A stretch of 64,000 nucleotides of DNA from Heteronotia binoei. Lineage: Eukaryota. The stretch is from the NCBI RefSeq assembly GCF_032191835.1, contig NC_083231.1:126356001-126420000 (forward strand). Reading direction: 5' to 3'. Positions within the stretch are counted from its first letter, which is position 1; each line of letters begins with the position of its first letter. Positions 5,106 to 64,000 of this stretch are shown here, in pieces. The notes below the pieces were generated by a model. The model made no database searches and was not told where the DNA came from. It worked only from the letters and a program-made list of their open reading frames with translations. A program made the translations under genes and the position numbers.

Positions 5106-5112
5106 GCTGTGT

Positions 5113-25679: not shown

Positions 25680-26605
25680 GAGCCAGTCTGGAGCAGGGGT
25701 GAAGTGCGCGGACTCTTATCTGGGAGAACCAAGTTGGATTCCCCACTCCTCCACTTGCACCTGCTGGAATGGCCTTGGGTCAGCCAGAGCTCTCTTATCT
25801 GGGAGAACTGGGTTGGATTCCCCACTCCTCCACTTGCAGCTGCTGGAATGGCCTTGGGTCAGCCAGAGCTCTCTTATCTGGGAGAACCGGGTTGGATTCC
25901 CCACTCCTCCACTTGCACCTGCTGGAATGGCCTTGGGTCAGCCAGAGCTCTCTTATCTGGGAGAACCGGATTGGATTCCCCCCTCCTCCACTTGCAGCTG
26001 CTGGAATGGCCTTGGGTCAGCCAGAGCTCTCTTACCTGGGAGAACCGGGTTGGATTCCCCACTCCTGCACTTGCACCTGCTGGAATGGCCTTGGGTCAGC
26101 CAGAGCTCTCTTATCTGGGAGAACCGGGTTGGATTCCCCACTCCTCCACTTGCACCTGCTGGAATGGCCTTGGGTCAGCCAGAGCTCTCTTATCTGGGAG
26201 AACCGGGTTGGATTCCCCCCTCCTCCACTTGCAGATGCTGGAATGGCCTTGGGTCAACCAGAGCTCTCTTATCTGGGAGAACCGGGTTTGATTCCCCACT
26301 CCTCCACTTGCACCTGCTGGAATGGCCTTTGGTCAGCCAGAGCTCTCTATCTGGGAGAACCAGGTTTGATTCCCCACTCCTGCACTTGCACCTGCTGGAA
26401 TGGCCTTCGGTCAGCCAGAGCTCTCTATCTGGGAGAACCGGGTTTGATTCCCCACTCCTCCACTAGCACCTGCTGGAGTGGCCTTGGGTCAGCCAGAGCT
26501 CTCTTATCTGGGAGAACCGGGTTTGATTCCCCACTCTTCCACTTGCACCTGCTGGAATGGCCTTGGGTCAGCCATAGCTCTCACAGGGGTTGTCCTTGAA
26601 AGGGC
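25680..26605 (+). repeat. Squam3-like SINE with ~11 tandem 79-bp units
   Basis: Unit ctcttatctgggagaaccgggttggattccccactcctccacttgcacctgctggaatggccttgggtcagccagagct recurs at a 79-bp period from ~25713. Confidence 0.92.
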
Positions 26606-44400: not shown

Positions 44401-47400
44401 TGGCCAGGCTGCTGGAGAAACACCAGCTGCACCCGCCTCGCTCGGCTGCCAAGCGTGGCCAGGATTCCCCAGCAGAGAGGGGCAGGTGGCTGAGTGCTCC
44501 CTGGCCGCAGAGCTGGCAGGACGGGGAGGGCGGGAGGCAGGGCACCATCTCTGCAGGCTCCCCCTGGGCTCAGCTCCGAGAAGCGGGCTGGACGCCTGCC
44601 CCAGGAGCACCCCCACTCACACTGCGCAGCTCCAGCCCCGTGTCGATGACATGCCGGACGCTCCCCACGGAGAAGGCGGAGTCTGCCAGCCAGTGGGTGA
44701 CAATCACCCGGCGTGCCGGAGGCTCCAAAGTCTCGTACAGTTTTTGGACCTGCCGCCCCACGCTGGGATGAAGGGGCAGCACCAGCAGGGAGCCCAGGCA
44801 GGGGTCCAAGGCCTCTGCTGCCCCATGGAGGGCCTCGCAGCACTCCTGGATCTCCTGGCGGGGGAGGAGGGGAAAACGTCCGTGACTGGGGTGTCCCACC
44901 AGACCCCAAACTCTGTCCACCGGCCTCTTCCCCTCCCAACATGCTCCGTTCCCCCTGCCCCAACCACCTTCCTGGGCCAGCCCCCTGCGCAGCGGCTGCC
45001 TCACTCCAAAAGCTCTCTGAGCTGGAGAAGAGACACCTGCCTGCCAAGAGGCTACGTCTGTCAATGGCTACTAGTCACAGGGGCTGAGGGGCACTAAAGC
45101 TCTGAATCCCAGGGGAAGGCGTTAGCCTCTTGTTGGTCCTCCAGAGGCAGTGGTTGACCTGACCCAGCAGGGCTCTTCCGATGCTCTTTTCAGGAGAAGG
45201 CCTCGGCCTCTCTGCCCCATTGTTGGCCCTCCAGAGGAACTGCCTGGCCACTCTGTGAGACAGGAGGCTGGACTAGATGGACCCTCACTGGTCTGACCCA
45301 TCAGGGCTCTTCTAATGCTCTTCTCAGGGGAAGGGCTCAGCCTCTCTGCCCCGTTGTTGGCCCTCCAGAGGAACTGGCTGGCCACTGTGAGAGACAGGAG
45401 GCTGGGACTAGATGGACCCTCCGTGGTCTGACCCAGCAGGGCTCTTCTAATACTCTTCTCAAGGGAAGGCCTCAGCCTCTCTGCCCCGTTGTTGGCCCTC
45501 CGGAGGAACTGGTTGGCCACTGTGTGAGACAGGAGGCTGGACTAGGTGGACCCTCCCTGGTCTGACCCAGCAGGGCTCTTCTGATGTTCTTATGAAAGCC
45601 TCTCTGCCCTGTTGTTGGCCCTCCAGAGGAACTGGCTGCCCACTGTGTGAGGCAGGAGGCTGGACTAGATGGACCCTCCCTGGTCTGACCAGCAGGGCTC
45701 TTCTGGTGTTCTTCTCAGGGGAAGGCCTCAGCCTCTCTGCCCTGTTGTTGGCCCTCCAGAGGAACTGGATTCCCTGCTGGCCTGTCCAGCCAAGCTGAGA
45801 GGCATTTGTTTCAATAGAGGGAGAGGATACAGGCCACATGATCAAATGATCTTAAGGGACCCTTCACATCCGGGCCACTTGCTATTTGAGATTTTACCAT
45901 CAGGTAGGCGATATAGAGTGTTGAAGGCAAAGACAAATAGATTCAAGGACAGCTTGTATCCAAGTGCCGTGGTTAAGCTAAATGCAGGGTTATGAATGGT
46001 TATGTGTTTTTAGATGCATTTAAATGGTCTATGTATATGTCCTTTTGTAGATGTGATTTTGGTATGTTTGTGGAAGAGCACCTCATTTCGTTGCTCTCAT
46101 NNNNNNNNNNNNNNNNNNNNNNNNNNNNNNNNNNNNNNNNNNNNNNNNNNNNNNNNNNNNNNNNNNNNNNNNNNNNNNNNNNNNNNNNNNNNNNNNNNNN
46201 NNNNNNNNNNNNNNNNNNNNNNNNNNNNNNNNNNNNNNAATGCAGAAAGGTTGTTTCCATTCTGAACCCCCAACCAGCAGCCTAAAATGGCTCACGTGCC
46301 CCCCCCCCCCCTTCTGACCAGACTGCTCCTTACCTGCTCGCTGGCCAAGAAGACCATCACGTCTCCAGCTTCCTCCTCCTTGTGCAGCTCCAGCACGGCT
46401 TGGCAGGCAGCAGCCACCCGGCCCTGAGGAGGGAGGGCTCCCGGTAGGTCAGGCGGGGGGCAGGGGCAAGCGGCGGCACCCGCACCAGCGGGGCATCAGG
46501 ACAGAAGCGGCAGAGTGGCTCCTCCAGCGAGGGGCTCCATCACCACTATGAGGCGCAGCTCGGGGCGCTGGCGCTGAGCGTCCTTCAGCAGTCCCAGGAG
46601 CAGGTCTGTGGCCACCGTGCGCTCCTGGGCCTCATCCAGCACCACCACCCCATACTGCCGCAGCAGGGGGTCAGAGGTCATCTCCTGCAAGAGGACCTCA
46701 TCCGAGCAGAACCTGCAACCCACACAAGGGCAGGTGGTGACCTAGAAGAGGCTGCGCTACCGGCCCCTCAATCACCAGCACTTCCCAGCGAGACCACGCA
46801 ATAAGTGACAGCCGACAAAGGCCCCCAACGAGACAGCCAAGCAGCAAAGCACCCCTTACCTGAGCAGGGTCTCCGGGATGCAGCAGTCCTCGTAGGGGAT
46901 GCAGTAGCCCACCTCGTGGCCCACGTTGAGGTCCATTTCATCTGCCACGCGCAGGGCCAGGCTCAAGGCAGCCAAGCTGTGGGGCTGAGCGCAGACCACC
47001 TGGCCATGGGCAAACTGCAGTGAAAGCGCATACTCCGCACACCACTGAGGCACCTGAGGAAGGAAGGATGAAGGAAGGCAAACCTGAGTGCTCCTCCTCC
47101 TCACTAGAGCACGACCCTGGCCCATCTGGGAAAGGCTGCTCCCCAGAAGACACCACCCGAGGAGGAGAGATGGCACAGGCAGCGTGTGTCACTCTGGGGG
47201 GCCCAGCTTCAAGAGCTGCTGTCCCTGGCTCAGTCGCCAGTCTCCAACCCTGCACAGGAGTCCAGCAGAACTGAGGCAGAAAAACAGGTTTTGGCTGCTT
47301 CACACCCCAACTGCGAGAAGGTCCAGTGAGAGCAGATATGCTTCTCAATTGCACACATTTGCCACAGAACAGCATCTGCTGAATCATAGGTGGTGCATTC

Positions 47401-48306
47401 AGTACGGTTAAAGTTGGCTGGATAAGAAATAAGCAGTGCAAATATTCTCCCCTCCCAATCAAAGACGTCATGCTTTTTGGTGGTTCTACCCCCTGTGCCT
47501 ATCCCGCTGCAACAACGCAGCCAGGCAAGGGATCCAAAGGAGCCAGCGAGGGACCCCCCCCACTCCTGTCCTCTGGGCCAAGGGGCCACTCGGCTGCCTG
47601 GCGAGGCAGTAAGCCCCCCCCCTGGGGGAGGAAGAGGCAGGCGGGGGGGGGCGCTGCAGACCCTCCCCTCCCCTCCCCCCCCCCGGGGACTGGCCTGGGT
47701 GCTCTTGCCGGCGCTCTGCAGCCCCCCCCCCCGTTGCCCCAGCAGGCAGAAGAGGCAGGCTGGGGGGGGGGGCGCTGCAGACCCTCCCCTCCCCTCCCCC
47801 CCCCCGGGGACTGGCCTGGGTGCTCTTGCCGGCGCTGGGGCTCTGCAGCCCCCCCCCCCGTTGCCCCAGCAGGCAGACGTGCCCCGCCAGGAAGAGGCAG
47901 GCGGGGGGGGGGGGGCGCTGCAGGCCCTCCTCTCCCTCCCCCCCCCGCGGGGGACTGGCCCGGGTGCTCTTGCCGGGGCTCTGCAGCCCCCCCCCCGGTG
48001 CCCCAGCAGGCAGACGTGCCCCGCCAGGAAGAGGCAGGCTGGGGGGGGCGCCGCAGACCCTCCTCTCCCCTCCCTCCCCCCCCCCCCCCGGGGACTGGCC
48101 TGGGTGCTCTTGCCGGCGCCGGGGGGCCCGGAGAGGAGCAGGAGCGGCGGGCGGCGGTGGAGGTGGCGCAGGAAGGCCTCCTTGGCGGGCCAGGCCGGCA
48201 GCCCCCGGCGCCCCCGCAGCAGCTCGGCGTAGCGCGACGAGAAGGGCAGCCCGTCGAAGGGGTTCCGCGGCAGCTCTCCTTCCTCCTCCTCTCTCCGCGC
48301 CTCCAT
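41407..48306 (-). CDS. DQX1: DEAQ-box RNA-dependent ATPase 1 (717 aa after repairing two 1-bp indels; exons 48306-48100, 47053-46860, 46712-46334, 44854-44621, 44281-44182, 44099-43941, 43855-43664, 43559-43434, 43343-43153, 42875-42685, 41587-41407)
   Basis: [12 protein letters not shown], motif I GKST, motif [25 protein letters not shown], and C-terminal [18 protein letters not shown]...CVLQ*. All exon phases chain correctly. Intron 1 is GC-AG. Exon 3 has a +1/-1 indel pair enclosing a TGA as assembled. Confidence 0.9.
45125..45775 (+). repeat. Tandem array of a CR1 3'-end unit (~120 bp, ~5 copies)
   Basis: Repeated ggccctccagaggaactgg...ggaggctggactagatggaccctc...ctgacccagcagggctcttct...gcctctctgccc in a DQX1 intron. 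Confidence 0.8.
45790..46100 (+). mobile_element. Rex1/Babar LINE 3' end
   Basis: [41 protein letters not shown] is the typical Rex1/Babar C-terminus, followed by an AT-rich 3'UTR. Confidence 0.8.
47620..48115 (-). repeat. Minisatellite (~120-145-bp unit, 4 copies) derived from the DQX1 exon 1/intron 1 junction
   Basis: GGCAAGAGCACC(C/G)AG|GCCAGTCCCC recurs with junctions at 48100, 47960, 47816 and 47695. Confidence 0.85.
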
Positions 48307-48364
48307 GGCCGGCCTGCCGGGGGAAGCGATGACCCCGCCCACCCCCCTGCGGCCCCCGGGGACA

Positions 48365-48495
48365 GGGGCACGTGACGCCACTGCTAGCCAATGGGCCGCT
48401 CGCTTCCTCTTCCTCTGGCGGGGGCGGAGCCGAGGGGCACTTCCGGCCACGCGCCCGCTCGTGGGGAGCGCTCTTTCCTCGCGCATGCGCTCCGC
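48365..48495 (-). promoter_or_regulatory. DQX1 CpG-island promoter
   Basis: GTCACGTG E-box/CRE overlap (48369-48380), CCAAT at 48388, GC box, ETS CCGGAAGTG (~48438-48446), and NRF1-like GCGCATGCGC at 48481. Confidence 0.6.
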
Positions 48496-48644
48496 CTGCC
48501 GGCCCTGGTCCGGCGGGAGACCCAGAGCAAAGAGAGAGAGAGAGAGGGAAGGAAGGAAGGAAGGGGGCTCCGGGGCCTCCAAGACTCCCACCCTGCGAGA
48601 GGGGCCTTCGCCAGTCCAAAGACCTCTTTGGTTCAGCATCTGTA

Positions 48645-49615
48645 TCATAAAGTTGGAAGGGACCTCCAGGGCCATCTAGTCGAACCCCCTGCACAATGCA
48701 GGAAACTCACAAACACCTCCCCCTAAATTCACAGGATCCTCATTACTGTCAGATGGCCCTCTAGCCTCTGCTTCAAAACCTCCAAGGAAGGAGAGCCCAC
48801 CACCTCCCCAGGAGGAAGCCTGTTCCACTGAGGAACCGCTCTGTCAGGAAGTGCTTCCTAATAGAATATAGAATCCTAGAGTTGGAAGGCACCCCCAGGT
48901 CACCTAGTCCAACTCCCTGCACAATGCAGGAAACTCACAAACGCCTCCCCCTAAATTCACAGGATCTTCATTGCTCTCAGATGGCCATCTAGCCTCTGTT
49001 GAAAAACCTTCAAGGAAGGAGAGCCCACCACCTCCCGAGGAGGAAGCCTGTTCCACTGAGGAATCGCTCTAACGGACAGGAAGTTCTTCCTAATGTTGAG
49101 CCAGAAACTCTTTTGATCTACTTTCAATTTATCAATGGTTTGGATTTGGAGGAAGGAAGAGAGGGGATGCTTATTGAATCTGCAGAGGATACTAAATTGG
49201 GAGCGGTCTCAAATACAGTAGAAGACAGAAACAGGATGATCTTGACAGGCTGGAAAGCTGGGCTGAAACCAATAAAATGGATTTAATGCGGATACATGTA
49301 AAGTTTTGCATTTCAGAAGGAAAAATCCAATGCATAGTCATAGATGGGGAGACTTGTCTTAGGAGTAGTATATGCGAAAAGAATCTAGGGGTCTTAGTGG
49401 GCCATACGCTGAACATGAGTCAACAGTGTGGCTCAAAAGGCAAATGCGATTCTGGGCTGTATCAACAGAAGTACAGCGTCCAGATCGCGTGATGTGATGG
49501 TATCACTTTACTCTGCCCTGGTAAGACCTCACCTGGAGTCTCGTGTTCAGTTTTGGGCACAAGAAGGAGATAGACAAATTGGAGTGGGTCCAGAGGAGGG
49601 CAATGAAGATGACGA
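48645..49615. mobile_element. CR1 fragments (minus-strand 3' ends 48645-49110; plus-strand RT remnant 49130-49615)
   Basis: CR1 tail sequences; ADDTKLG-like motif, EKNLGVLV, KANAILGCI, YSALVRPHLE. Confidence 0.8.
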
Positions 49616-49689
49616 GGGGTTTGCATTGTGCAGGGATTTGAAGAGGGGGGTGGTTTCAAATGCTGAATTTGGGGTAGTGCAAGTTTGAG

Positions 49690-50070
49690 AGGTGGTTTGG
49701 TGTAGTGGTTAAGTGTGCCGACTCTTATCTGGGAGAACCGGGTTGGATTCCCCACTCCTCCACTTGCACCTGCTGGAATGGCCTTGGGGCAGCCATACCT
49801 CTTGCAGTTGTCCTTGAAAGGGCAGCTGCTGTGAGAGCTCTCTCAGCCCCATCCACCTCACAAGGTGTCTGTTATGGGGGAAGAAGATAAAGTTTATTTC
49901 AATTTGTATTTTAGTTTCAAGGAGATTGTAAGCCACTCTGAGACTCTGTCCTTGAAAGGGCAGCTTTTGGAGAGCTCTCTCAGCCCCACCTACCTCACAG
50001 GGTGTCTGTTGTGGGGAAAGGAGATTGTGACTGCTCTGAGACTCCTTCGGGTAACAAAGAGTGAGGTATA
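49690..50070 (+). mobile_element. Squam3-like SINE(s)
   Basis: gtttggtgtagtggttaagtgtgccgactcttatctgggagaacc head, body, and a duplicated 3' part. Confidence 0.85.
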
Positions 50071-50792
50071 AATTCTACCTTGTTGGAAGGGGCTCAGGAT
50101 TTTGTGGTGTGTGACCAGCATGGGCCTGTCTGAAAAAATAGCCCCGCATACTTTGCATCTCACACGCTAGACCTGGTGGCTGGGGAGGGAGGTGATCTGA
50201 AGGGGGTGGAACTGCCCCATCCTGGGCAGAGCAGTCCCTGCTGGGGCTCAGACTTAAAGTGACACCTCGACTTCATGGTGGGAGGGAAAATTAAAAGCTT
50301 CTGCCCTCGTAGCCTGATGGATGTGACTGGCTGTTTCAGGGGGTGGGTTGGGGATTTTCCTGGTCATCTGGTTGGTGCTCCTGCCAGTGCCCTGGCTGAG
50401 GCACGAGGACATTCTGTGGGCAGCTGACAGCCCTCTCTCAAGCTGTCCTCTGGTTCTCTGAAGGGCTGCGGATGTCGCAGATACAAAGCAGAGGGCTAAA
50501 GCAACAATGGAGAATCACTCAGGATGCATCCAGCAAGATACAAGCTACGCCTCGCCATTATCATCACTGCTGTGCGCCAGAGATGCCAAGAAGATGGCAT
50601 CCCTTCCTCACCATTGTGTCTGCACCTCACAGGCCTGTGTGATCAGCTTGCAGGAGAAGCTGTGTTTAAAACCTCTCACATCTGTGCCAATGTGGACACT
50701 GCAATAGCAACCACAGGGTCAGATGGTACCAGAGCAACAGCTGTTGTTGGAAAAGGCAAGCGGCTCACTTTGCAGTCATTATGGGGTTAACT

Positions 50793-53700
50793 GATGCTGT
50801 TGTTCAGTCGCACAGTTGAGTCTGACTCTTTGCGACCCCCTGGACAAAGTCACGCCAGGCCCTCCTGTCTTCCACCATCCTCCGAAGTCTGCTCAAATTC
50901 ATGTTTGTTACATCAGTAACACTGTCCAGCCATCTCAACTTCTGCTGTCCCCTTCTTCTTTTGCCTTCTGTCTTTCCTGACATCAGGATCTTCTCCAGGA
51001 AGTGCTCCGTTCTCATTTGGTGGCCAGAGTATTTGAGCTTCAGCTTCAGTATCTGACCTTCCAGGGAACAGTCTGGGTTGATTTCCCTTAGGCCTGACTG
51101 ATTGGATCTTCTCGCAGTCCAAGGGACTCTCAAGAGTCTTCTCCAGCACCACAGCTCAAAAGCATCTATTCTTCTGCGCTCAGCCTTCCTTATGGTCCAG
51201 CTCTCACAGCCATACATTACTCTTGGGAATACCATTGCTTTGACTATACGGACTTTTGTTGGCAGGGTGATGTCTCTACTTTGTATTCTACTGCCCAGGT
51301 TCGCGATAGCTGTCCTCCCAAGGAGCAAACATTTTTTAATGTCATGGCTACAGTCACCATCTGCAGTGATCTTGGATCCCAGAAATGTGAAGTCTGTCAC
51401 TACTTCCATGTCTTCCCCTTCTATTTGCCAAGGTGCGATGGGGCCGGATACCATGATCTTAGTTTTTTTTATGTTGAATTTCAAGCCTACTTTTGTGCTC
51501 TCCTCTTTCACCCTCAACAAGAGGTTCTTTAGGTCTTCCTCACTTTCTGCCATTAGTGTCATCTGCATAACTGAGGTTGTTAATGTATTTCCTGGCAATC
51601 TTAATTCTGGCTTCTGCTTCATCCAGGACAGCATTCCGCATGATGTACTCTGCACATAAATTAAATAAGCAGGGTGACAATATACATCCTTGTCGAACTC
51701 CTTTTCCTATTCTAAACCAATCAGTTGTTCTATATCCCATTCTGACAGCTGATTCTTGACCCTTATACAGGTTTCTCAGGAGACATGTGAGGTGGTCTGG
51801 TACTAGGGTGACCATAATGTCTGAAGGCCAGCCAGGGACACCTTGGGGGGGGGGGGAAGGTAGGAGTGTGCGCGCGCCGCCAGAAACAGGAAGTGACGTC
51901 ACTTCCGGTGACGGCACTTCCGGTGATGTCATGCCACCGCCGGAAACAGGAAGTGACGCCACTTCCTGTGACATCATTTCCCCCACGTCACCTGCCGGAA
52001 ACGGGAAGTGACATCACTTCGTGTGGCATCACTTCCCCCAAATGACATCATTTCCCCCAAATGCCACTGCCGGAAACAGGAAGTGACTTCACAGCACTTC
52101 CTGTGACGTCCCCAAAAATCCCCCAAATATCACCGCCGGAAACAATTTTGTTCTCAAATCCTGTATATACTTCATCAGTATATGGGATAAGGCACTTTCT
52201 CAACTGTGCTGCATAATGCAGCCTATTTATTTTGTCCTGTTTGCTCTGTTGGCTCTATCTGCGCCACCTTCATCACTTTCGGGGTGTGGATCCCCCAGTG
52301 GGGTGGTCTCCCGACTCCCTCCGCCGGCTATTTCTGATAGCCCTGCGCCCCCTCTTTCATTTGATATGTGTCCCGTGCGGGTGCCACCCTCCCGCCAGGA
52401 GATGCCGCAAAATGAGCCCCCTTGAGGCTTATGGCGGCAGGGCTCGGGGGAAGCGAGCTAGACTGCTGTTCTTTTGAGGGGTTATAGAGTGTTTCGAGCC
52501 CGTCCCTGTGGCATCGGTCCCATCGTTGTGGGACCCAGGGGGCCAGCGCAGTGGCACGCCGAAGCAGCCTGTCACTAATAACACAGGTCGAGATGCAGGA
52601 CAGGAACCCAGAAGTGACCGACAGGCTGCTTCAGCGTGCCGCTGCGCCGGCCCCCTGGGCCCCACAACGATGGGACCGATGCCACAGGGACGGGCTCGAA
52701 ACACTCTATAACCCCTCAAAAGAACAGCAGTCTAGCTCGCTTCCCCCGAGCCCTGCCGCCATAAGCCTCAAGGGGGCTCATTTTGCGGCATCTCCCGGCG
52801 GGAGGGTGGCACCCGCACGGGACACATATCAAATGAAAGAGGGGGCGCAGGGCTATCAGAAACAGCCGGCGGAGGGAGTCGCGAGACCACCCCACTGGGG
52901 GATCCACACCCCGAAAGTGATGAAGGTGGCGCAGATAGAGCCAACAGAGCAAACAGGACAAAATAAATAGGCTGCATTATGCAGCACAGTTGAGAACGTG
53001 CCTTATCCCATATACTGATGAAGTAAATACAGGATCTGAGAACAAAATTGCACCAGAAGACACAAACACAAAGCTCCCTTACACTGAATCAGTTCTTGGG
53101 TCCACCAAAGTCAGTATTGTCTAGTCCAGTCACAAACACAAAGCTCCCTTACACTGAATCAGTGCTTGGGTCCACCAAAGTCAGTATTGTCTANNNNNNN
53201 NNNNNNNNNNNNNNNNNNNNNNNNNNNNNNNNNNNNNNNNNNNNNNNNNNNNNNNNNNNNNNNNNNNNNNNNNNNNNNNNNNNNNNNNNNNNNNNNNNNN
53301 NNNNNNNNNNNNNNNNNNNNNNNNNNNNNNNNNNNNNNNNNNNNNNNNNNNNNNNNNNNNNNNNNNNNNNNNNNNNNNNNNNNNNNNNNNNNNNNNNNNN
53401 NNNNNNNNNNNNNNNNNNNNNNNNNNNNNNNNNNNNNNNNNNNNNNNNNNNNNNNNNNNNNNNNNNNNNNNNNNNNNNNNNNNNNNNNNNNNNNNNNNNN
53501 NNNNNNNNNNNNNNNNNNNNNNNNNNNNNNNNNNNNNNNNNNNNNNNNNNNNNNNNNNNNNNNNNNNNNNNNNNNNNNNNNNNNNNNNNNNNNNNNNNNN
53601 NNNNNNNNNNNNNNNNNNNNNNNNNNNNNNNNNNNNNNNNNNNNNNNNNNNNNNNNNNNNNNNNNNNNNNNNNNNNNNNNNNNNNNNNNNNNNNNNNNNN

Positions 53701-55075
53701 NNNNNNNNNNNNNNNCCGCCAGCAGCCCCCCCCTCTCTGCTTACTTACCTTGTTCCAGGGCGGGTGGCGGCCTCTCCTCCGGCCTGCTGGTGCTGCTGGC
53801 GGGGCTGGCAGCGGCTGCGGAGGCCGGGGAGAGGCCTTCGCTGGTCGGCGCTGGTCGCCGGAGGCCCTCCAGAGTCTCTGGAGGGCCTCCCGGGACCAGC
53901 GCCGGCGCCTCCGCGGCCTCCGCTGGTCGCCGGAGGCCCTCCAGAGTCTCTGGAGGGCCTCCCGGGACCAGCGCCGGCGCCTCCGCGGCCTCCGCTGGTC
54001 GCCGGAGGCCCTCCAGAGTCTCTGGAGGGCCTCCCGGGACCAGCGCCGGTGCCTCCGCGGCCTCCGCTGGTCTCTGGAGGGCCTCCAGCGACCAGCGGAG
54101 GCCGCGGAGAGGCCTCCGCCACCGCCACCGGGCCCCGGGCGGGGAAGGCGGTGAGTGAGGGAGCGTCCCTGCGCACACGCAGGGACGCTCCCTCCCTCAC
54201 TTGCCGCCTTCCCCGCCCGCGCGCGGGGCCCACCGCCTCCGGGGCTGGCTAAACCGGGACCTCTAATGGTCCCGGTATAGCCAGCCCGGGAGGCGGGAAT
54301 AGGGGGCCAGAACCGGGAGGCGGGAATAGGGGGCCAGAACCGGGACGGTCTGGCCACCCTATCTGGTACTCCCATCTCTTTAAGGACTTGCCACAGTTTG
54401 TTGTGATCCACACAATCAAAGGCTTTAGCATAGTCAGTGAAGCAGAAATAGATGTTTTTCTGATACTCCTGTGCTTTCTCCATAATCCAGCGGATGGTGG
54501 CAGTTTGATCTCTAGTTCCTCTACCTCTCCGAAACCCAGCTTGAACTTCTGGTAGTTCCCAATCCACATACTGCTGAAGCCTAGCTTGTAGGATCTTTAA
54601 CATGACCTTGCTGGCATGTGAAATGAGTGCAATGGTGCGGTAGTTTGAACATTCCTTGGCATTACCCTTCTTTGGAATTGGAATATAAACTGATCTTTTC
54701 CAATCCTGTGGCCACTGTTGTGTTTTCCAAATTTGTTGACATAATGTGTGCATCACTTTAACAGCATCATCTTTTAGGACTTTGAATAGCTCAACTGGGA
54801 TACCGTCATCCTTGTAGAATTCTTCTGTGTATTCTTGCCACCTCTTTCTGATCTCTTCTGCTTCCGTTAGGTCCCTACCATTTTTGTCCTTTATCATGGC
54901 CACCTTAGCACGAAACGTTCCCTTGATTTCTCCCATTTTCTTTGAGATCTCTTGTCCTTCCCATTCTATTATTTTCCTCTATTTCTTTGCATTGTTCCTT
55001 CAGGAAGGCCTCCCTCTTTCCTTGCTGTTCTCTGGAAATCTGCATTCAGTTGGGTGAATCTTTCCTTTTCATCTT
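50793..55075 (-). mobile_element. RTE-BovB LINE (3' ~1.7 kb), split by a hAT insertion at 51804-54361
   Basis: YADDT, KVGLKFNIKKTKIM, VMYGCESWTI, IDAFELWCWRRLL and RAWRDFVQGVAKSQTQL motifs. Upstream half: WKRSVYIPIPKKG, YRTIALISHASK, QAGFRRGRGTRD, DYAKAFD. Confidence 0.95.
51804..54361. mobile_element. Non-autonomous hAT fold-back element, copy 2
   Basis: TIRs TAGGGTGACCA...TGGCCACCCTA, perfect 8-bp TSD TCTGGTAC (51796-51803 / 54362-54369). Contains a ~900-bp hairpin (52143-53050), 72-bp palindromic tandem units (53850-54090) and an N gap at 53194-53715. Confidence 0.92.
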
Positions 55076-55654
55076 GCTGTTAGTGGTTAATAAACAGGAC
55101 ATGGTGTTTTGTATCTCCTATGCAGATAAAAGTAGGCTGCAGCCTGCCTGGGATGACTGAAGAGGAGGTATCTTGACCCATAACCTTCCTCTTGGTCAGT
55201 TCGCATCTTTTTTGTTCGCATCCTCTGGGAGTAGGAGGAAGGGCAGCCATCCCAGCTCAGCCATGGAAGAGTCAGGCCCTAGCTAGCAGCCGGAAGGCAG
55301 ACTTTGCTTGCTTCTATCCAAGGCACCCTTCCTGGGTGTTTTTCAGCACACGGCATTTTCCCTTGTCAACTTAAGCAGGTGTCTTGCTACTCTGTCTGCA
55401 CATCACCACTGACTTTTAAACTGAAATCTCAACACTTACCCAGCTGTGTGGGATAATTTGCAGGATCTGGGATATCTATAGCCTGCTGCCGGCATACACC
55501 ACCTTTGCCCTTAAATCTGCTGGGCGAGGGGAAGGACTGGCCTGTCTGCCTGAGACCCTGCAGAGCCATTGCCAGGCTGAGTGGACCATGATGGACCAAG
55601 GAGGGGGGTCTGATTCAGTATGAAGCAGCTTCAGGGGGACCCACCTAGACCGAC

Positions 55655-55900
55655 TGATGATACTGGATTCATACCCCGCCCTATACTCTGAATCTCAAGA
55701 GCAGTCACCATCTCCTTTACTTCTCCCCCAACAGACACCCTGTGAGGTGGGTGGGGCTAAGAGGGCTCCCCCAGCAGCTACCCTTTCAAGGACAACCCCT
55801 ACAAGAGCTGTGGCTGACCCAGGGCCATTCCAGCAGGTGCAAGTGGAGGAGTGGGGAATCAAACCTGGCCCTCTGCACTTCACTACTACACCAAACTCCT
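55655..55900 (-). mobile_element. Squam3-like SINE
   Basis: Reverse-complement SINE from the L2-like tail (ataccccgccct) to the head (cactactacaccaaac). Confidence 0.85.
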
Positions 55901-56836
55901 CTCTGTGGAGGAGCCCTGGCTCAGTGGAACAGCCTTTGCTTGGGCAGCTCCCGGTCTCACCCCCAGCCTGATGGAAAAGACCACTGCCCGCCACTCTGGA
56001 GGGGTGCTTCCAGTCTGGGTAGACAATACTGACCGCGATGGCTCGCAGGGGCTGCCTGGGGGGCTCCAAGTGTTCAGCCCTGTGGCCGCCGCCTCCTCCT
56101 GGCCAGCCCCTCGATGGTGGCACTTCCTCCCTCTGATGGGACTGCAGTCTGTGCTCACCCCAACCCCACTATCGGAAAATCACCTGAGAGGGTGGAGGGA
56201 TCAGAGGGGGGATACCCCAAAGGGCCCTCTCGCCAGCACCCCGAGAAGACCGGGTGAGCAGCACACAGGGAAGCCCCTCTTCCTTCTCCTGGCCTCCACC
56301 CATTGGGCAGGACTTCCTCTCTTGCCCCCACTTCGTTCTTCACTCACAGTTCTCCGTTCTGGCTGAAACCCAAGGTGGATCAACTTGGTATAAAATGGTG
56401 TAAAATCAAAGAGCACGAGAGACCGGGGGCCTGCCAGCCTCCATGGAGCAGGGGGCAACGCACTTGCATGGATCCCACCCCCACGACAGTTGTCCTCTCC
56501 ATTGAATCCTCACCACCACCTGTGAGGTAGGCTTGGCTGAGTGTGTGTGGCTGACTCAAGGCCACTCGTCCAGCTGGCAGGGCAGGGCAGGGCAGAAGGG
56601 GGTTCATACCTGGAGCTTCCAGATCTGAGACCAACACAACAGCCCCTGTGCAGACCCCGCCAGAGGCTCCCGAGCAAGACAGACTCTGCCCTCCCGCCCT
56701 CCCTAGAAGGCAGCTTCCCCAGCAGCCCTGGAGTATTGGCCTGGTCGAGTAGCAGGTTCGCAAGGACCGCTCAGCAGGGCTCAGCTGTAGCACTCAAAGG
56801 AGCTGCTCCCACGCACACACGAGAAGGTGAGTCATT

Positions 56837-56842
56837 TTTATT
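56837..56842 (-). terminator. AUP1 polyadenylation signal
   Basis: Minus-strand AATAAA ~210 nt after the stop (57053). Confidence 0.6.
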
Positions 56843-57052
56843 TTGATAGCGAAAGCCTCCCCCCCCCCCGGCTCCAGGGCCCCCCAGTGCTGTGCTGAGT
56901 CCAGGGCCCGGAGCGAAAGCGCAGGTGGGCTGGGATCAGCCCGGGACACACGGAGTTGGAGTAGCCACAGGTTGCTCATCGTCCACGGCAGCCCTCCACG
57001 CCCATAGCCGCCACTGCCCGTTGCCAAGTCCAGAAGAAGTTGCATGATCTGC

Positions 57053-60000
57053 TCAGCGGTTCCCCTGGCTCTGGGGCATCCCGTATTTCTCTGTGTATTT
57101 CCTGCGGAGGCAAGGGAAGCCTGAGGCAGTGCCCAGCAGAGCCAGCCAGCCAGTCTGCCCTGCCCAAGCACCACAAGCCCTCCTTGCCCCCTCCAGCCTC
57201 ACCTCCTGGCGTAGTCAAAGAGCGCCCGCTTCCGGTCCTGCAGGGAGAGGTGCCTGGCCTCCGGGGACCTGGCAAACACCTTCAGGGGCAGCTGCAACCA
57301 CAGAGAGAGAGAGAGAGAGAGAGAGGAGAAGAGGGAGGGAGTCACCCCCTTGCCCTAGTGCATGCTTGCTTTCTCCTCCTCCCCCCACCCGAAGGCGGTC
57401 TGCACGTACCGCAGCTGGAGGAGGAGCCGCAGGGGGCTGAGCACTGGAGACGGATGGGCCAAGCAAGGAGGGCTCCTCTTCTGCCTCGCTGGGGGTGAAG
57501 GGAACCCGCCCCTCCAGCAGGTTGGCAATGGTGGCGTCCACGCAGTTTGTCTGGGCTGGGGAGAGAGGCAGGCCATATGTGAGAGGCAGGGCGAAGGGGA
57601 AAAACCAACAACCCTGGGCCAGACTTCCTCCAAGCGTGGTGGCTCTTGGATCTGGAGTATCAAATTGATTCCTCTTCCAGATCACCTCCAACGGACTTTA
57701 AACATCCCCCGCCGCCAGCCTCCTCCTGGGTTTAAATTAACACTGAATTAATGGACTATATTGATCCTTTATCCTCATTATGTGGTTTTATTATGGGATG
57801 CTGCTTATACAAGTTTTTCCGGAGAGCAGTGGGGTTTAAGTCTTCTCCAAAAACTAACACTGAAATTCAGCGACACCGCACCAATACAAGCAATGCTTAT
57901 TCTGACACAAACTTTGGCGAGACAGTGGTCATGTAACCAGGCATTGGAAAGGTAGACTGAGGGACCCTCCTGCACACCTGATCAAGTGAGGCCTGACTCA
58001 GGAGAACTCCAGTGGACCAAGTCCTGCATTTAAGGTGGCTCCCGCCTAGTTCTGCTGCAAAAGACTAACGCAGTCACCTATGTGGAAATCAGCTGGTTTA
58101 TGCCGCCTTCCAACTCACTCTGTCTTGCCTTACTGACGCTTTCCTTGCTCTGCAATGCCCAGGAGGGAACCTTGAGCTCCACCTTTCAGTCACCAATCTG
58201 CAGCAGCCCCCCTCCCACACCCTCCCAGCATCCACTCACTCACCCAAGTCTTTGCGAATGACTGCCAGGGGCACGTGAGGCAGAACTTCCTTGACACGCT
58301 GAGCCATGCCTGTCAAGTGGGGTGTATCCTCCGTGGGGGGTGAGCTGGAGGAAGCCTGAGGCCGGGCTGCCAAGGGCTGACTTGGGACTGGGAAAGAGAG
58401 AGATGGGTGAAACACAAGTGTTTGCTGAAGGTCCCACCTCCAGGGCAATTCTGGGGCGCAGCCACCTTCCTCCCTTTCTGGGACCGCTTGCCACAGGCAG
58501 AGTGAAGTTGTCACTAACATCCTCTCCTGGGGAAAAATCCACCCCCCCCCCCACTTCTACAAGCCAGAGCACAGATGGGGCTAGCAAGGCCAGGCCCGTG
58601 GGATGACCATGTTGATGGGCGCAGTGGGAAGAATGGCTCAGTTGAGGGCTGGAGGACCGTGGCCCACCTGGGGCATAGGGAGTTGGAGGGCCGTAGCTCA
58701 CCTGGGGCATAGGGGGCTGGAGGGCCATGGCTCACCTGGGGCATAGGGGGCTGGAGGGCCATGGCTCACCTGTGGCATAGGGGGCTGGAGGGCCGTGGCT
58801 CACCTGGGGCATAGGGAGCTGGAGGGCCGTGGCTCACCTGGCGCGTAGAGGGCTGGAGGGCTGTGGCTCACCTGGGGCATAGGGAGCTGGAGGGCCGTGG
58901 CTCACCCCACCTGGGGCATAGGGGGCTGGAGGGCTGCGGCTCACCTGGGGGATAGGAGGCTGGAGGGCTGCGGCTCACCTGGGGGATAGGAGGCTGGAGG
59001 GGCCGTGGCTGACCTGGGGCATAGGAGGCTGGAGGGCTGTGGTTCACCTGCAGCATATGGGGCTGGAGCGCTGTGGCTCACCTGGGGCATATGGGGCTGG
59101 AGGGCTGTGGCTCACCTGGGCATAGGGGGCTGGAGGGCTGTGGCTCACCTAGAGCATAGGGGGCTGGAGGGCTGTGGCTCACCTGGGGCATAGGGGGCTG
59201 CTGTGGCTCACCTGGGGCATAGGAGGCTGGAAGGCTGTGGTTCACCTGCGGCATATGGGGCTGGAGGGCTGTGGCTCTCCTGGGGCATAGGGGGCCGGAG
59301 GGCTGTGGCTCACCTGGGGCATAGGGGGCTGGAGGGCCGTGGCTCACCTGGGGCATAGGGGGCTGGAGGGCTGTGGCTCACCTGGGGCATAGGGGGCTGT
59401 GGCTCACCTAGGGCATAGGGGGCTGGAGGGCCGTGGCTCACGTGGGGCATAGGGGGCTGCTGTGGCTCACCTGGGGCATAGGAGGCTGGAGGGCTGTGGT
59501 TCACCTGCGGCATATGGGGCTGGAGGGCTGTGGCTCTCCTGGGGTCTGGAAGGCTGTGGCTCACCTGGGGCATAGGGGTCTGGAAGGCTGTGGCTCACCT
59601 GGGGCATAGGGGGCTGGAGGGCTGTGGCTCACCTAGGGCATAGAGGGCTGGAGGGCCATGGCTCACCTGGGGCATAGAGGGCTGCTGTGGCTAACCTGGG
59701 GCATAGGAGGCTGGAGGGCTGTGGTTCACCTGCGGCATATGGGGCTGGAGGGCTGTGGCTCTCCTGGGGCATATGGAGCCGTAGGGCTGTGGCTCACCTG
59801 GGGCATAGGGGGCTGTTGTGGCTCACCTGGGGCATAGGGGTCTGGAGGGCTGTGGCTCACTTAGGGCATAGGGGGCTGGAGGGCCGTGGCTCACCTGGGG
59901 CATAGGGGTCTGGAAGGCTGTGGCTCACCTAGGGCATAGGGGGCTGGCGGGCCATGGCTCACCTGGGGCATAGGGGGCTGGAGGGCCGTGGATCACCTGG

Positions 60001-62994
60001 GGCATAGGGGGCTGGAGGGCTGTGGGTCTCCTGGGGCATATGGGGCCGGAGGGTCGTGGCTCACCTGGGGCATAGGGGTCTGGAGGGCTGTGGCTCACCT
60101 GGGGCATAGGGAGCTGGAGGGCTGTGGCTCACCTCACCTGGGGCATAGGGGGCTGGAGGGCTGCGGCTCACCTGGGGGATAGGAGGCTGGAGGGCCGTGG
60201 CTCACCTGGGGCATAGGGGGCTGGAGGGCTGTGGCTCACCTGGGCATAGGGGGCTGGAGGGCTGCGGCTCACCTGGGGGATAGGAGGCTGGAGGGCCGTG
60301 GCTCACCTGGGGCATAGGGGGCTGGCGGGCCGTGGCTCACCTCACCTGGGGCATAGGGGGTTGGAGGGCCGTGGCTCACCTGGGGCATAGGGGGCTGGAG
60401 GGCTGCGGCTCACCTGGGGGATAGGAGGCTGGAGGGCCGTGGCTCACCTGGGGCATAGGGGGCTGGCGGGCCGTGGCTCACCTCACCTGGGGCATAGGGG
60501 GTTGGAGGGCCGTGGCTCACCTGGGGCATAGGGGGCTGGAGGGCTGCGGCTCACCTGGGGGATAGGAGGCTGGAGGGCCGTGGCTCACCTGGGGCATAGG
60601 GGGTTGGAGGGCCGTGGCTCACCTGGGGCATAGGGGGCTGGAGGGCCGTGGCTCACCTGGGGCATAGGGGGCTGGAGGGCCGTGGCTCACCTGGGGCATA
60701 GGGGGTTGGAGGGCTGTGGCGCAGTCGCTTCAGGTGCTCTGCTTTGTCAGCAGCAGTGAGCCGTGTTGACACCACATCAAGCTCCAAGGCCAGGAGCTGC
60801 AAGAGGCACAGAGATCAATGGGGAGGCTCCCTGTCCAGAGGAGCCCCCCCTGTCAACATCCCTGACACCAACCGTGGGGGGGCCCCAGCCGGTAGGATGC
60901 TGTGGAATACGAGGGCAGCGAACACCATAGTCCCATGGCTGCCATGGGGAAACCCCACCCTGGGCTTCAGTCCTTACCTCTTGGACTCGAAGAGCCAGCT
61001 CCTCCCGCGTCTCTTCAGCTCGCCTGCAGACGGAAGGGAGCCACCTGCACCAGGCCAAGAAAAAAGCCCAAATGAAGACGGGGCAACAAGCTGGCTCTCC
61101 TTCTCCCTACTGGCATAAAGGGGCCCTTCTTTTAAAGGACAACAGAGCTGCCTCCAAACACTCCTCCTCCCACCCCCAAAGAATGACAGAGAACTAGTAC
61201 CTTACTTGATAAATGGTGAAGGGAACAAAGAAAGTCCAGAGCAGCTCAGTAACCCAGGAGGCATCCGCTGTGCTCTTCAAAGAGAAAGGGAAAGGAAACT
61301 ATAAAAAGCCCCGGGAACCTGTGGCCGGCACACAACCCTGTTGGGATAAGGGTGGAGCAGCGCCCCCCCCCCCAAGACTCATTGTGGCAGAACACTTTGC
61401 AAAAAAAGGAAAGACCCGAATATGCGCAACGCAGGACAGGAGTGAAAGTACAACGCTAGCCCCTCTCCCTCCCCCCTAAAGCACTCACCACGGCAACAAA
61501 GGGCCTCTGCACTTGCAGGGCCACTGGCTGGACCACATCCAAGATGGAGAACGGCCACGTGCTGGAAAGGGAACAGCCCGGTCAGCAAGGCCAGGCCTGG
61601 AGAGAGGCAAGCCTATGGGCAGCACCCGCCCCTCCTGCTCGCTGCTCCCCCAGCCCACCTGAAGCGCAGAAGCCCCACCCTCCCGTTGGTGGTGGTCTCC
61701 TCAGGGAAGAGCAGCAGAGGCGGGTTGCCTCCGTGGAGGAGTAGGCCTTCAAGGACTCCAGGAGCTCTGCTCGGCTGCCCGTGCTCCCCACCTCCAGGAA
61801 GCCACGGGACCAGCAAATGAACCCAGAGGCTCCGTTCAGCATCGGCTGTTGGAGAAGAGAGAGAGACACAGAAGGCAAGAATGTAAAGCCTGAGAAACAC
61901 CACCCACCCATCCTCCAGGTATCCAGAGGCCAATGAGGGAAGACAGCTCTTGGGTGCCCGGAAGCAGCCCCAAGATAACTGATGGTTCAGCTGCTACCAA
62001 AAAGTCTCACCCCATCCTCCAAGATGGGGTTGGGCAGGTAAATTGCTGGAAACTTCCTAAAGGTAGCACCACAAAATGCTCAGGTGGCATCCTTCAAGCC
62101 TGGAATGAATTTTTGAGAGGACGGTGGCTTAGTGGTAGAGCATTTGCTCAGAAAGCAGAAGGTCCCTGGTTCAATCTCCAGCATCTCCAACTAAAGAAGT
62201 CCAGGCATGGAGGCGTGAAAAACCTCAGCTTGGGACCCTGAGAGACAGTCTGAGTAGACAAGACTGACTTTGATGGACCGAAGAGGGTCTGATTCAGTAG
62301 AAGGCGGCTTCATGTGTAGAGGGAGGGATAATGGCTCAGTCGTAGAGCATCTGCTTGGTAAGGTTCAATCCTGGCATCTGCAACTAAAAAAGGGTCCAGG
62401 CAAATAGGCATGGAAAAACCTCAGCTGGAGACCCTGGAGAGCGGCTGCCAGTGAGTTGACAAGACTGACCGGGGGGGGGGGGGGTCTGATGCAGTAGAAG
62501 GCAGCTTCCTATGAGACCAGGCGTGGCTAGGCGACCCTCATGCAGGGCCCACTCACCGCATTGCAAGAGGTCAGCAAGTTGACGACGTTGTGGTCGAAGT
62601 GCGTGACGTGGTTGGCGATGTAGACGCGGGCGCGGAGGCCGTGCTGCCGAGGCTGGCTCTGCCGCACCAGGAGGCCGAGCACGGAGCACATCACCCGCAC
62701 GACAAACCTGCGGAGGGCGCAGTCCGGAGGGCGCAGCTGACGAGGAAGACGTGCAGGCCGAGGAAGAGGCGCAGCAGCAGCAGGCACAGCCCCACCGGCG
62801 CGTAGAGCAGCAGCGACAGCAGCAGCAGCCCCGTCGCTCGGCAGCCTGCAGGGGGGAGAGGGCGGGCGCGCGCTTAGAGCGGGGGGGGGGGGAGGCGGCG
62901 CGCGCCCGCGGGGGAGGGAGGGGGGCTCACCGGTGGGAGTCGAAGAGGCGGTCCGGCCGGGGGCGCGGGGGCGGGCGTGCGGGGAGGCCTCCAT
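57053..62994 (-). CDS. AUP1: Lipid-droplet/ERAD factor AUP1 (~429 aa after repairing four 1-bp indels; exons 62994-62931, 62845-62557, 61845-61659, 61561-61489, 61274-61201, 61044-60978, 60796-60691, 58387-58244, 57555-57410, 57291-57203, 57101-57053)
   Basis: RLFDSHR, hydrophobic LLLYAPVGLCLLLLRLFLG, acyltransferase-like ANHVTHFDH, LLLFPEE.TTNGR.GLLRF, CUE domain MAQRVKEVLPHVPL...CVDATIANLLEG, and G2BR ARHLSLQDRKRALFDYARR. Splice sites are GT-AG and phases chain after repair. Confidence 0.9.
58643..60720 (-). repeat. 34-bp minisatellite (~60 copies) derived from the AUP1 exon 3' end + splice donor
   Basis: Minus-strand unit GTGAGCCAC(A/G)GCCCTCCAGCCCCCTATGCCCCAG. The first copy overlaps the coding end (...CCC TAT GCC CCA G|GTGAGC at 60691/60690). 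Confidence 0.93.
62115..62515 (+). mobile_element. Two tandem tRNA-headed SINEs with CR1-type 3' tails
   Basis: Heads gtggcttagtggtagagca...ggttcaatctcc and ggctcagtcgtagagca...ggttcaatcc; tails ggtctgattcagtagaaggc(g/a)gcttc. Confidence 0.7.
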
Positions 62995-63234
62995 GGCGTC
63001 CGGCCGCTCCCTCCCTCCCTCCGTCTCCCGCCTTCCCGGCCTCAGGGCCAGGCGGAGGCCCGCTCAGCCCCTGCCGCCATCTTGGCCGCGCCTGCGCAGA
63101 CGAGGGAGCGCCGTTTCCGGGCCGCCCGGAGAAAGGGCGGGGCCTCCTTCCTCCGCGGCACGGGCTCCTCTTCCCGGCAGGCCTTGCGCGGCGGCCGGCA
63201 CTTCCGGCCCCCAGGCGAGGAGGAGGAGCGGGCG
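62995..63234. promoter_or_regulatory. AUP1/HTRA2 bidirectional CpG promoter (240 bp between the putative ATGs)
   Basis: YY1-type GCCGCCATCTT at 63073-63083, GC box at ~63135, ETS CACTTCCGG at 63199-63207; head-to-head gene arrangement. Confidence 0.7.
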
Positions 63235-63461
63235 ATGCGGCGCGGTGGGCGCTGCGGGCGGGGGTGGCGGCGGGGCGGGGCTGGGGCTGGGGGCGGGGCT
63301 GGGCGGGCGCGGGGGGGGCGGCGGCGGCCGTGCTGGTGGGCGGGGACGGGGAGGGGCGCCCCGTGGGGATCACGCCCCTCCCCGCGAGGCACCTTCAACT
63401 TCATCGCCGACGTGGCCGAGAAGACCGCCCCCGCCCTCGTCTACGTGGAGATCCTGGGCAG
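63235..63461 (+). CDS. HTRA2: Serine protease HTRA2/Omi, exon 1 (gene continues beyond the window; start codon uncertain)
   Basis: SPRGTFNFIADVAEKTAPALVYVEILGR followed by AG|GTGAG (phase 2); head-to-head with AUP1. The N-terminal part is GC-rich and may contain indel errors. Confidence 0.8.
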
Positions 63462-64000
63462 GTGAGGGAGGGGGAGGAGAGGAGAGGGGCCCCCAAGCAG
63501 AGCCCCCAGCGCCCCCTCCCCCGTCTCCATGGAGATCCTGAGCGGGGGGGGGAGTGGGAGGAGAGGCCCCCCCAAGCAGAGCCCCCAGCGCCCCCTCCCC
63601 CGTCTCCATGGAGATCCTGAGCGGGGGGGGAGGGGGAGGAGAGGGGCCCCCCAGGACCCCCTCCCCTTGTCTCTATGGAGAGCCTGAGCGGGGGGGGGGA
63701 GGGGGAGGAGAGGGGGCCCCCCAGCGCCCCCTCCCCCCGTCTCCATGGAGATCCTGAGCAGGGGGGGAGGGGGAGGAGAGCCCCCCCAAGCAGAGCCCCC
63801 AGCGCCCCCTCCCCCGTCTCCATGGAGATCCTGAGCAGGGGGGGAGGGGGAGGAGAGGCCCCCCCAAGCAGAGCCCCCAGCGCCCCCTCCCCCGTCTCCA
63901 TGGAGATCCTGAGCGGGGGGGGAGGGGGAGGAGAGGGGCCCCCCAGGACCCCCTCCCCTTGTCTCTATGGAGAGCCTGAGCGGGGGGGGAGGGGGGAGGA
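63462..64000 (+). repeat. 67-79-bp minisatellite (at least 7 copies) derived from the HTRA2 exon 1/intron 1 junction
   Basis: Unit ...gccccctcccccgtctccatggagatcctgagc(a/g)gggggggagggggaggag aligns to the exon end gcccccgccctcgtctacgtggagatcctgggcag|gtgagggagggggaggag. Confidence 0.85.

Follow-up and report, generated by a model that had tools for sequence, protein, structure and literature searches.

Minisatellites spanning exon ends and 5' splice sites in the adjacent genes DQX1, AUP1 and HTRA2 of the gecko Heteronotia binoei

Introduction

Minisatellites whose first monomer lies across an exon-intron boundary have been described in human F7 (intron 7), IFI6 (6-16), CBS (intron 13), LMNB2 and PDGFA (intron 4) (Borensztajn et al. 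2006, PMC1557585). F7 has several identical donors, of which the most upstream one was shown experimentally to be used exclusively, and this choice was attributed to 5'-to-3' scanning; in IFI6 and CBS, use extends to the first few donors (PMC1557585). A related system is known from amphioxus, in which Ebner et al. (2010, PMC3087553) described "mirages", i.e., tandem repeats that span exon-intron boundaries in the Adh3 and globin genes and are possibly a general feature; earlier Adh3 work on mirages is cited by these authors. Mirages leave normal splicing undisturbed, show concerted evolution and length instability, and were discussed as raw material for intron gain under the tandem-duplication model (PMC3087553). 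In the Rogers model, as cited in the same paper, an intron is gained via the tandem duplication of an AGGT-containing segment, and cases of intron gain by tandem duplication have been reported (PMC4974935, PMC2891723).

The gecko arrays that are presented here are three further examples of this documented curiosity, the architecture of which is already known. The window, i.e., the whole stretch of DNA that was analysed, comprises 64,000 nt of the forward strand of Heteronotia binoei NC_083231.1 (positions 126,356,001-126,420,000; GCF_032191835.1). It contains three adjacent genes, DQX1, AUP1 and HTRA2, each of which carries a tandem array with a first unit that consists of an exon end and a 5' splice site. 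As in the F7 type, an authentic donor is followed by reiterated pseudo-donors and the most upstream donor is normally used, and the unit lengths overlap (37-100 bp in the F7 type vs 34-140 bp in the gecko). Unlike IFI6, for which 26 donors are cited, the gecko AUP1 has approximately 60 units, and 29 of the 34 nt of its unit are exonic compared to 4 of 37 nt in F7. Moreover, in contrast to the human F7-type cases, the pseudo-donors of HTRA2 have decayed, the donor of DQX1 is of the GC type and three adjacent genes are affected. The arrays resemble mirages in being minisatellite-like boundary duplications in several genes of one lineage, although mirages occur at both 5' and 3' boundaries, whereas in the window of the gecko, a squamate, they are found only at donors. 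A strict rule that arrays on the acceptor side cannot survive was dropped because amphioxus has such arrays (PMC3087553). What the gecko arrays share with the Rogers model is that the segment duplicated in tandem contains a splice signal, but they only lengthen existing introns and create none. Intron gain by duplication, in which both splice sites come from the copies of a single duplicated segment, was rejected because the acceptors of DQX1 (47054, 577 nt past the array) and AUP1 (58388, 258 nt past the array) lie in unique sequence. An earlier note on this DNA had seen in the arrays a new bearing on intron evolution; this has been anticipated, since boundary-spanning minisatellites were already linked to intron gain by tandem duplication (PMC3087553).

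Results

TRF, the unit listings and the alignments showed that in all three genes the first unit combines the 3' end of an exon with its authentic donor and that the array expands from there into the intron, as the earlier note had described (Table 1). The note had also placed the seeds exactly at the exon/donor junction, which is correct in that the junction lies within the first unit in 3/3 genes and incorrect in that the arrays start 17-38 nt upstream of it, within the exon. Its view that the arrays are unrelated was confirmed: the units differ in size (~140 bp in DQX1, 34 bp in AUP1 and 78 bp in HTRA2) and share no sequence. A transposable-element origin of the three arrays was rejected because their units match nowhere else in the window. 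Separately, arrays of the window with units of 67, 74/140 and 79 bp do match elsewhere within it.

The GC content of the arrays was 69-80% (80% in DQX1) vs 57-58% in the remainder of their introns. On the coding strand, the AUP1 array is C-rich (skew -0.36) and has no G4 motif, while those of DQX1 and HTRA2 are mildly G-rich, carry G4 motifs and are located in first introns, approximately 230 nt or less from the start codons, with CpG-rich promoters. RNA reads revealed 1-nt homopolymer errors in the assembly and, therefore, the lengths of the G-runs and the copy numbers are approximate.

Table 1. Positions of the exons, tandem arrays and assembly gap discussed in the text (numbered from the first letter of the window)
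Feature	Position	Strand	Basis and remarks
DQX1 exon 2 (predicted), starts VPQWCAEY	46859..47053	-	DHX15 alignment begins at residue 65 of 5xdr_A
DQX1 array, three complete units (121-144 bp, ~140) plus part of a fourth	47631..48119	-	TRF, unit listing, alignment, composition
DQX1 coding exon 1 (predicted), 69 aa, phase 0	48100..48306	-	translation; ATG at 48306; GAGKSTQ (Walker-A end) at its 3' end
Assembly gap, within a LINE reverse-transcriptase copy	53194..53715	.	DQX1-AUP1 intergenic space; touches no array or exon
AUP1 exon 8 (predicted), phase 1, where the CUE domain begins	58239..58387	-	open frame; CUE Pfam match, E=0.002
AUP1 array, ~60 units of 34 bp	58646..60719	-	TRF, unit listing, lag analysis
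AUP1 exon 7	60691..60796	-	RNA joint 60796>60978; GT at 60690; its final 29 nt supply the exonic portion of the unit
HTRA2 coding exon 1, ends VYVEILGR (76 aa in the assembly)	63235..63462	+	translation; match to human HTRA2
HTRA2 array, at least 7 copies of a 78-bp unit (range 67-84 bp)	63425..64000	+	TRF, unit listing, alignment, lag analysis

The gene that we take to be AUP1 was named from the reading of its translations and from synteny, as it lies head-to-head with HTRA2. Its repeat unit consists of 29 exon nt followed by GTGAG, and a perfect CAGGTGAG is present in 42 of the 60 units. Lag analysis revealed a perfect higher-order duplication of 141 bp at 60268-60549 (141/141 identical). 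Intron 7 measures 2303 nt, of which the array occupies 2045; without the array the intron would be approximately 260-280 nt long, and the other introns of the gene are small (97, 156, 181 and 214 nt). The end of exon 7 corresponds to a variable linker, and reading through the donor leads to a stop codon within 12 codons. An AUP1 protein is expected to carry a CUE domain behind an acyltransferase-like N-terminal part. The CUE match in exon 8 scores 18.1 bits, below the Pfam cut-off of 21.1, as the domain is divided between two exons. The possibility that AUP1 is a pseudogene was rejected; since RNA reads correct the four apparent frameshifts of exons 1-3 (61734, 62725, 62973 and 62997) and the spliced mRNA is abundant, these frameshifts are assembly errors.

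The first, authentic donor is used in the mRNA of both AUP1 and HTRA2. In AUP1, the borders of exon 7 and five other introns are supported by RNA joints, and the RNA contigs (1624 nt at a depth of 102 in run X1, and also in run X3) depart from the genome exactly at 60691, with the depth falling from approximately 19-26 in the exon bin to 1.4-6.2 over the first array units. Because these units are deeper in RNA than the other AUP1 introns (0-1.3), later donors may be used to a minor extent, or the sequence may be retained; reads of three runs fall on array units 2-5. The counts of loose ends at AUP1 are dominated by SINE reads from 62150-62450. In HTRA2, a piece of an RNA contig spans 63373-63459, stopping 3 nt short of the exon end, and there is no RNA depth across 63500-63700. 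With approximately 60 near-identical strong donors and, in the RNA contigs, a clean use of the first one, the AUP1 intron offers a larger natural test of 5' splice-site choice than the human cases.

Exon 1 of HTRA2 aligns to human HTRA2 up to ...YIEILDR. The match of its end to the human HTRA2 chains (E about 6e-7) is better than to HTRA3 (4e-4) or HTRA1 (2e-3), which places the gene, judging by these alignments, closer to HTRA2 than to either of the others. The first unit of the array combines 26-38 nt of the exon end with GTGAGG, and lag analysis gave a higher-order period of 292 bp. The array continues beyond the edge of the window, so that the copy count is a lower bound. GT has been lost from all seven later copies; reiterated donors are a feature of the AUP1 and DQX1 arrays and not of this one.

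The DQX1 candidate has the features that define a DEAQ-box helicase, i.e., a P-loop (with weak Pfam matches), a DEAQ motif II (VLDEAQERT in the open frame 46741-46499) and an HA2 domain (HA2_N and HA2_C matches, E about 1e-8). Based on the gene order, which is as on human 2p13.1, we presume that it is DQX1 rather than another DEAH helicase. The alignment of exon 1 to DHX15 ends at residue 64 of 5xdr_A, and exon 2 follows there without a gap (residues 64/65 of this one PDB chain). The exon 1 junction is accordingly a predicted one that is fixed only by homology; an alternative GT donor was rejected because the two exons fall on consecutive DHX15 residues. The predicted donor is of the GC type (GCCAGT at 48099) with a weak C at +3. 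Each unit starts with approximately 20 nt of the exon end, followed by CAG/GCCAGT (the slash marks the junction), and the first intron bases of the four junction copies are 48099, 47959, 47815 and 47694. Two of the three later copies are identical through CAG/GCCAGT and the third has CGG. We infer that the first donor is also used in DQX1.

The probability that at least three of the six window-unique arrays would cover one of approximately 23 donors was ~0.01, and an own-intron null gave 0.002-0.02 for three of six arrays on donors; both values are nominal and post hoc, and the excess of donor-covering arrays within the window is suggestive.

Discussion

We propose, with a probability of roughly 65%, that these are three independent, neutral boundary-spanning minisatellites in compact GC-rich genes, which are tolerated through first-donor choice. 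Each array would have originated from a short tandem duplication, 34 to ~140 bp in length, that by chance lay across the end of an exon and the adjoining 5' splice site, and would then have been amplified by the usual minisatellite processes, i.e., slippage, unequal exchange and multi-unit duplications. The exon ends appear to be the older sequence, as that of HTRA2 aligns to human HTRA2 and that of DQX1 is the conserved end of Walker A. Multi-unit turnover is ongoing, as is visible in the 141/141 block of AUP1 and the 292-bp period of HTRA2. Tolerance would follow from the spliceosome keeping to the most upstream donor, the only one that is attached to a real exon, as is the case in AUP1 and HTRA2 and is probable in DQX1. 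Because the spliceosome stays on this donor, the mRNA would be unchanged and the copies would merely lengthen a once-short intron. The donors of the later copies have either been kept, as what would be silent pseudo-sites (AUP1 and DQX1), or been lost (HTRA2); judging from the reading frames, the use of a later AUP1 donor would lead to a premature stop. A survival filter of this kind, with the first donor preserving the open reading frame, was one of the two explanations that the earlier note had offered, and it fits the use of the first donor in the AUP1 and HTRA2 RNA as well as the parallel with F7 (PMC1557585). The clustering in three adjacent genes would most likely reflect a GC-rich, compact and minisatellite-prone region in which there are few junction-free placements and in which exon-internal duplications are purged. 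Neither a donor-specific mutational mechanism nor a function would be needed.

The other explanation was a mutational bias that acts at the donors themselves, with GC-rich 5' splice sites and the adjoining intron starts, which are rich in G-runs, being prone to duplication through G4, R-loop or hotspot instability. We regard such a bias as unlikely, though it is the best of the alternatives. It would account for the nominal excess of donor-covering arrays within the window (~0.01; 0.002-0.02 under the own-intron null), but this excess is post hoc and comes from one window out of about 750 that were read, and arrays that contain exon sequence catch the notice of readers more easily than others. 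The high GC content of the arrays, as compared to the other parts of their introns, points in the same direction, as do the coding-strand G4 motifs, first-intron positions and CpG-rich promoters of DQX1 and HTRA2. Against this, the coding strand of the AUP1 array is rich in C and lacks a G4 motif, and the array is located in intron 7, away from a promoter; for this reason no single strand-specific mechanism fits all three. In addition, the seeds start inside the exons rather than at the donors, and the unit lengths and sequences are unrelated. R-loop or G4 instability as a common cause, as the earlier note had suggested, was abandoned, given the different strand composition of the three arrays.

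A broader form of this idea, which we find more doubtful still, is that in the gecko lineage a mutational process linked to donors favours the birth of boundary-spanning minisatellites at the 5' splice sites of genes that are compact and GC-rich. If this were true, such arrays would rank as a major driver of intron growth that is specific to this lineage, and no natural test of upstream-donor selection would be more extreme than the AUP1 array with its approximately 60 consensus donors. Likewise, if the arrays proved to be unusually common and donor-biased across gecko genomes, this would reveal a way, specific to the lineage, in which tiny introns become longer and would provide numbers for the tandem-duplication ideas of intron evolution.

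It is also conceivable, but quite improbable, that the reiterated donors have a selected function, serving as platforms for the U1 snRNP or tuning the expression or splicing of these genes in the role of decoy or poison sites. The 42 perfect consensus donors among the approximately 60 AUP1 units and the slightly raised RNA depth over the first of these units would agree with a function. The high identity of the units is, however, accounted for by recent amplification, of which the 141/141 block is an example, and the main mRNA contigs use the first donor alone. Since every later copy in HTRA2 has lost its GT, the donors are not a shared preserved feature of the arrays; the pseudo-sites of F7 are silent as well (PMC1557585). 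The arrays are least of all to be explained, in contrast to the three independent neutral minisatellites that we favour, as having been created or inflated by an error-prone long-read assembly: although reads correct single-base indels in the AUP1 exons, the window has 4 N gaps and a mis-join could have produced the perfect 141-bp duplicate, the units have diverged and show structured variants and higher-order periods like those of real minisatellites, AUP1 units 2-5 carry RNA reads from three runs and the exon junction in the first unit has been verified.

One of the gaps interrupts a LINE on the minus strand between DQX1 and AUP1. Around it, positions 1-99 of the RVT_1 profile were matched at 54250-54978, and positions 110-156 and 156-204 at 50807-52013. 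Because the two reverse-transcriptase halves flank the gap in the right order and orientation, the join across it is supported.

Arrays at exon-intron boundaries

In DQX1, AUP1 and HTRA2, TRF detected three tandem arrays in the window, which confirmed the observation of the earlier note, while its interpretation was partly supported. The first unit comprised an exon end and its donor in all three genes, whereas the arrays did not start exactly at the junction, as had been claimed, but inside the exon. The AUP1 unit consisted of the terminal 29 nt of exon 7 followed by GTGAG, and 42 of the 60 units contained a perfect CAGGTGAG. Intron 7 has a length of 2303 nt, of which the array occupied 2045 nt; without the array it would measure about 260-280 nt, similar to the neighbouring introns. 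Each DQX1 unit began with about 20 exon nt and CAG/GCCAGT, with CGG replacing CAG in one copy; GCCAGT was kept in all of the later copies. In HTRA2, the GT was lost in all seven later copies inside the window. A unit comparison bore out that the three sequences were mutually unrelated, and none occurred elsewhere in the window. Other arrays in the window, with units of 67, 74/140 and 79 bp, were multi-locus and therefore TE-derived, forming a class distinct from the three junction arrays.

Coordinates of the junction arrays, other arrays, genes and assembly gaps in the window
Feature	Position	Strand	Description
AUP1 array	60719-58646	minus	about 60 units of 34 bp; TRF and unit listing
DQX1 array		minus	3 complete units (121-144 bp) followed by an incomplete fourth
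HTRA2 array		plus	units of 67-84 bp, starting 26-38 nt inside exon 1; extends past window end
67-bp arrays	5110-5506 / 33972-34443	opposite orientations	at least 2 loci
79-bp arrays	22725-23154 / 25713-26582	opposite orientations	at least 2 loci
DQX1	start 48306	minus	exon 1 of 207 nt, ends with Walker-A end
DQX1 exon 2	start 47053	minus	followed by DEAQ motif and HA2 domains
AUP1	62994 to about 57056	minus	five introns backed by RNA joints
HTRA2	start 63235, exon 1 end 63462	plus	end of exon 1 matches human HTRA2 as far as ...YIEILDR
Gap (N run)	53194-53715		flanked by the start codon of DQX1 (48306) and the final exon of AUP1 (about 57056); outside every exon and junction array
Second gap	46101-46238		in DQX1 intron, outside arrays

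Each exon of the three genes served as a separate query. All five of the RNA-confirmed AUP1 introns (181, 156, 214, 97 and 711 nt) were GT..AG. In the DQX1 alignment, exon 1 ended at residue 64 and exon 2 started at residue 65 of the DHX15 chain 5xdr_A, and the exons were likewise contiguous on 6sh6_A and 6id1_V. On this alignment, the intron must start directly after the Q codon with GCCAGT, and intron 1 is thus a GC-AG intron with a weak donor that has C at +3 (48098-48099; acceptor 47054). The exon ends of HTRA2 and DQX1 are conserved coding sequences, which indicates that the intronic copies came from the exon and not the exon from the copies. We assert this direction for these two genes only; the AUP1 exon 7 end falls within a variable proline-rich linker.

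Donor choice and tolerance of the arrays

Over 60560-63700, the raw RNA runs X7 and X8, the RNA contig set X1 and a set labelled 'DNA?' (X3) were compared with the window. Because the AUP1 introns were spliced out of the X3 contigs, this set contains cDNA-derived sequence and is unusable as a genomic control. The earlier note had offered a survival filter as one explanation, and this was supported: the principal AUP1 contig, which is record 1 of X1 with 1624 nt and a depth of 102, broke exactly at the first donor (60691), as did one X3 contig, and a piece of a 1524-nt HTRA2 contig ended at 63459, with no RNA or contig coverage on the array side at 63500-63700 in X1, X3, X7 or X8. This aligns well with the human F7 minisatellite, in which identical pseudo-donors, although functional, never enter into competition with the authentic donor upstream of them, owing to a 5'-to-3' scanning-type selection (PMC1557585). 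Tolerance of the arrays through the choice of the upstream donor is therefore well supported. Read-through of the first AUP1 donor would meet a stop within 12 codons and donor 2 would shift the frame, hence we infer that the later donors would yield transcripts with premature stops. The AUP1 depth of about 19-26 over the exon bin fell to 1.4 in X7 and 6.2 in X8 across array units 2-5, values above those of the other AUP1 introns (0-1.3). Owing to this residual depth, it is possible that a minor part of the AUP1 RNA uses the later donors or that intron 7 is removed more slowly.

Two SINE-like copies in AUP1 intron 2 (62150-62450) showed very high RNA and contig depth with many false joints. Their reads dominated the table of loose ends, from whose listing the AUP1 pseudo-donor positions were absent. 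Additionally, every X7 and X8 read differed from the assembly at 60761, 61008, 62602, 62662, 62695 and 62704, while X1 and X3 matched it, and thus runs under one species label come from diverged lineages.

Known counterparts, chance and mutational bias

The gecko arrays belong to an already known class of boundary-spanning minisatellites, and the novelty claimed for them was overstated. Minisatellites whose first monomer lies across an exon-intron boundary were described in human F7, IFI6 (26 donors), CBS, LMNB2 and PDGFA (PMC1557585, introduction). In amphioxus, such repeats were named 'mirages', are possibly general in cephalochordates, occur at the 5' and 3' boundaries alike without disturbing splicing and were tied to a tandem-duplication model of intron gain (PMC3087553). 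The gecko arrays create no introns because their acceptors are unique sequences. No genome-wide enrichment study of such arrays was found in our literature search.

Chance was evaluated using two null models. The first assumed uniform seeding with the arrays collapsed and used about 23 donors from the stretch 41.4-64.0 kb (six RNA-validated, the others predicted from open frames); three or more of the six window-unique arrays would then overlap a donor with a probability of about 0.01. In the second, a seed could fall only within the ancestral intron of its gene or over the donor of that intron, and the values were 0.13 for AUP1, 0.21 for DQX1 and 0.08-0.73 for HTRA2 (joint 0.002-0.02). The coincidence is nominally unlikely, and the figure is post hoc and from one window among about 750 examined in the genome.

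A donor-specific mutational bias is unproven. The arrays had a GC content of 69-80% vs. 57-58% in the remainder of their introns, and those of DQX1 and HTRA2 had a mild G excess and G4 motifs in the coding strand. The R-loop/G4 form of the bias that had been proposed does not fit AUP1, whose array has a strongly C-rich coding strand (skew -0.36) and is located in intron 7; given this difference in strand asymmetry, a process of this kind, tied to the direction of transcription, does not explain all three arrays.

Assembly quality and gene neighbourhood

In several runs, the reads added a base after 61734, 62725 and 62973 and removed one at 62997, coinciding exactly with the apparent frameshifts in AUP1 exons 1-3 and restoring the frame. 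AUP1 is therefore intact and the assembly carries single-base homopolymer errors, so that neither exact copy numbers nor the lengths of G runs in the arrays of DQX1 and HTRA2 are reliable. In the N-terminal part of HTRA2 exon 1 (63235-63400), the expected HTRA2-like residues did not share the reading frame of the conserved exon end, which suggests another such error in a very GC-rich stretch. A perfect 141-bp higher-order duplication of four units in the AUP1 array (60268-60549, 141/141 identical) either arose very recently or is a product of the assembly, and the HTRA2 array had a 292-bp higher-order period. Judged by their sequences, the structured variation and higher-order periods of the assembled arrays are consistent with the appearance of real minisatellites.

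The larger gap lies inside a minus-strand LINE copy (50807-54978). Reverse-transcriptase profile positions 1-99 were found to its right (54250-54978) and 110-156 and 156-204 to its left (50807-52013), and this correct order and orientation supports the scaffold join and hence the three-gene neighbourhood. Between the LINE halves lie about 2.5 kb of foreign DNA, including the gap and GC-rich repeats. This insert contains a 70-bp repeat at 53061-53193, which adjoins the gap, and a 72-bp array at 53849-54119 that includes an internal palindrome.
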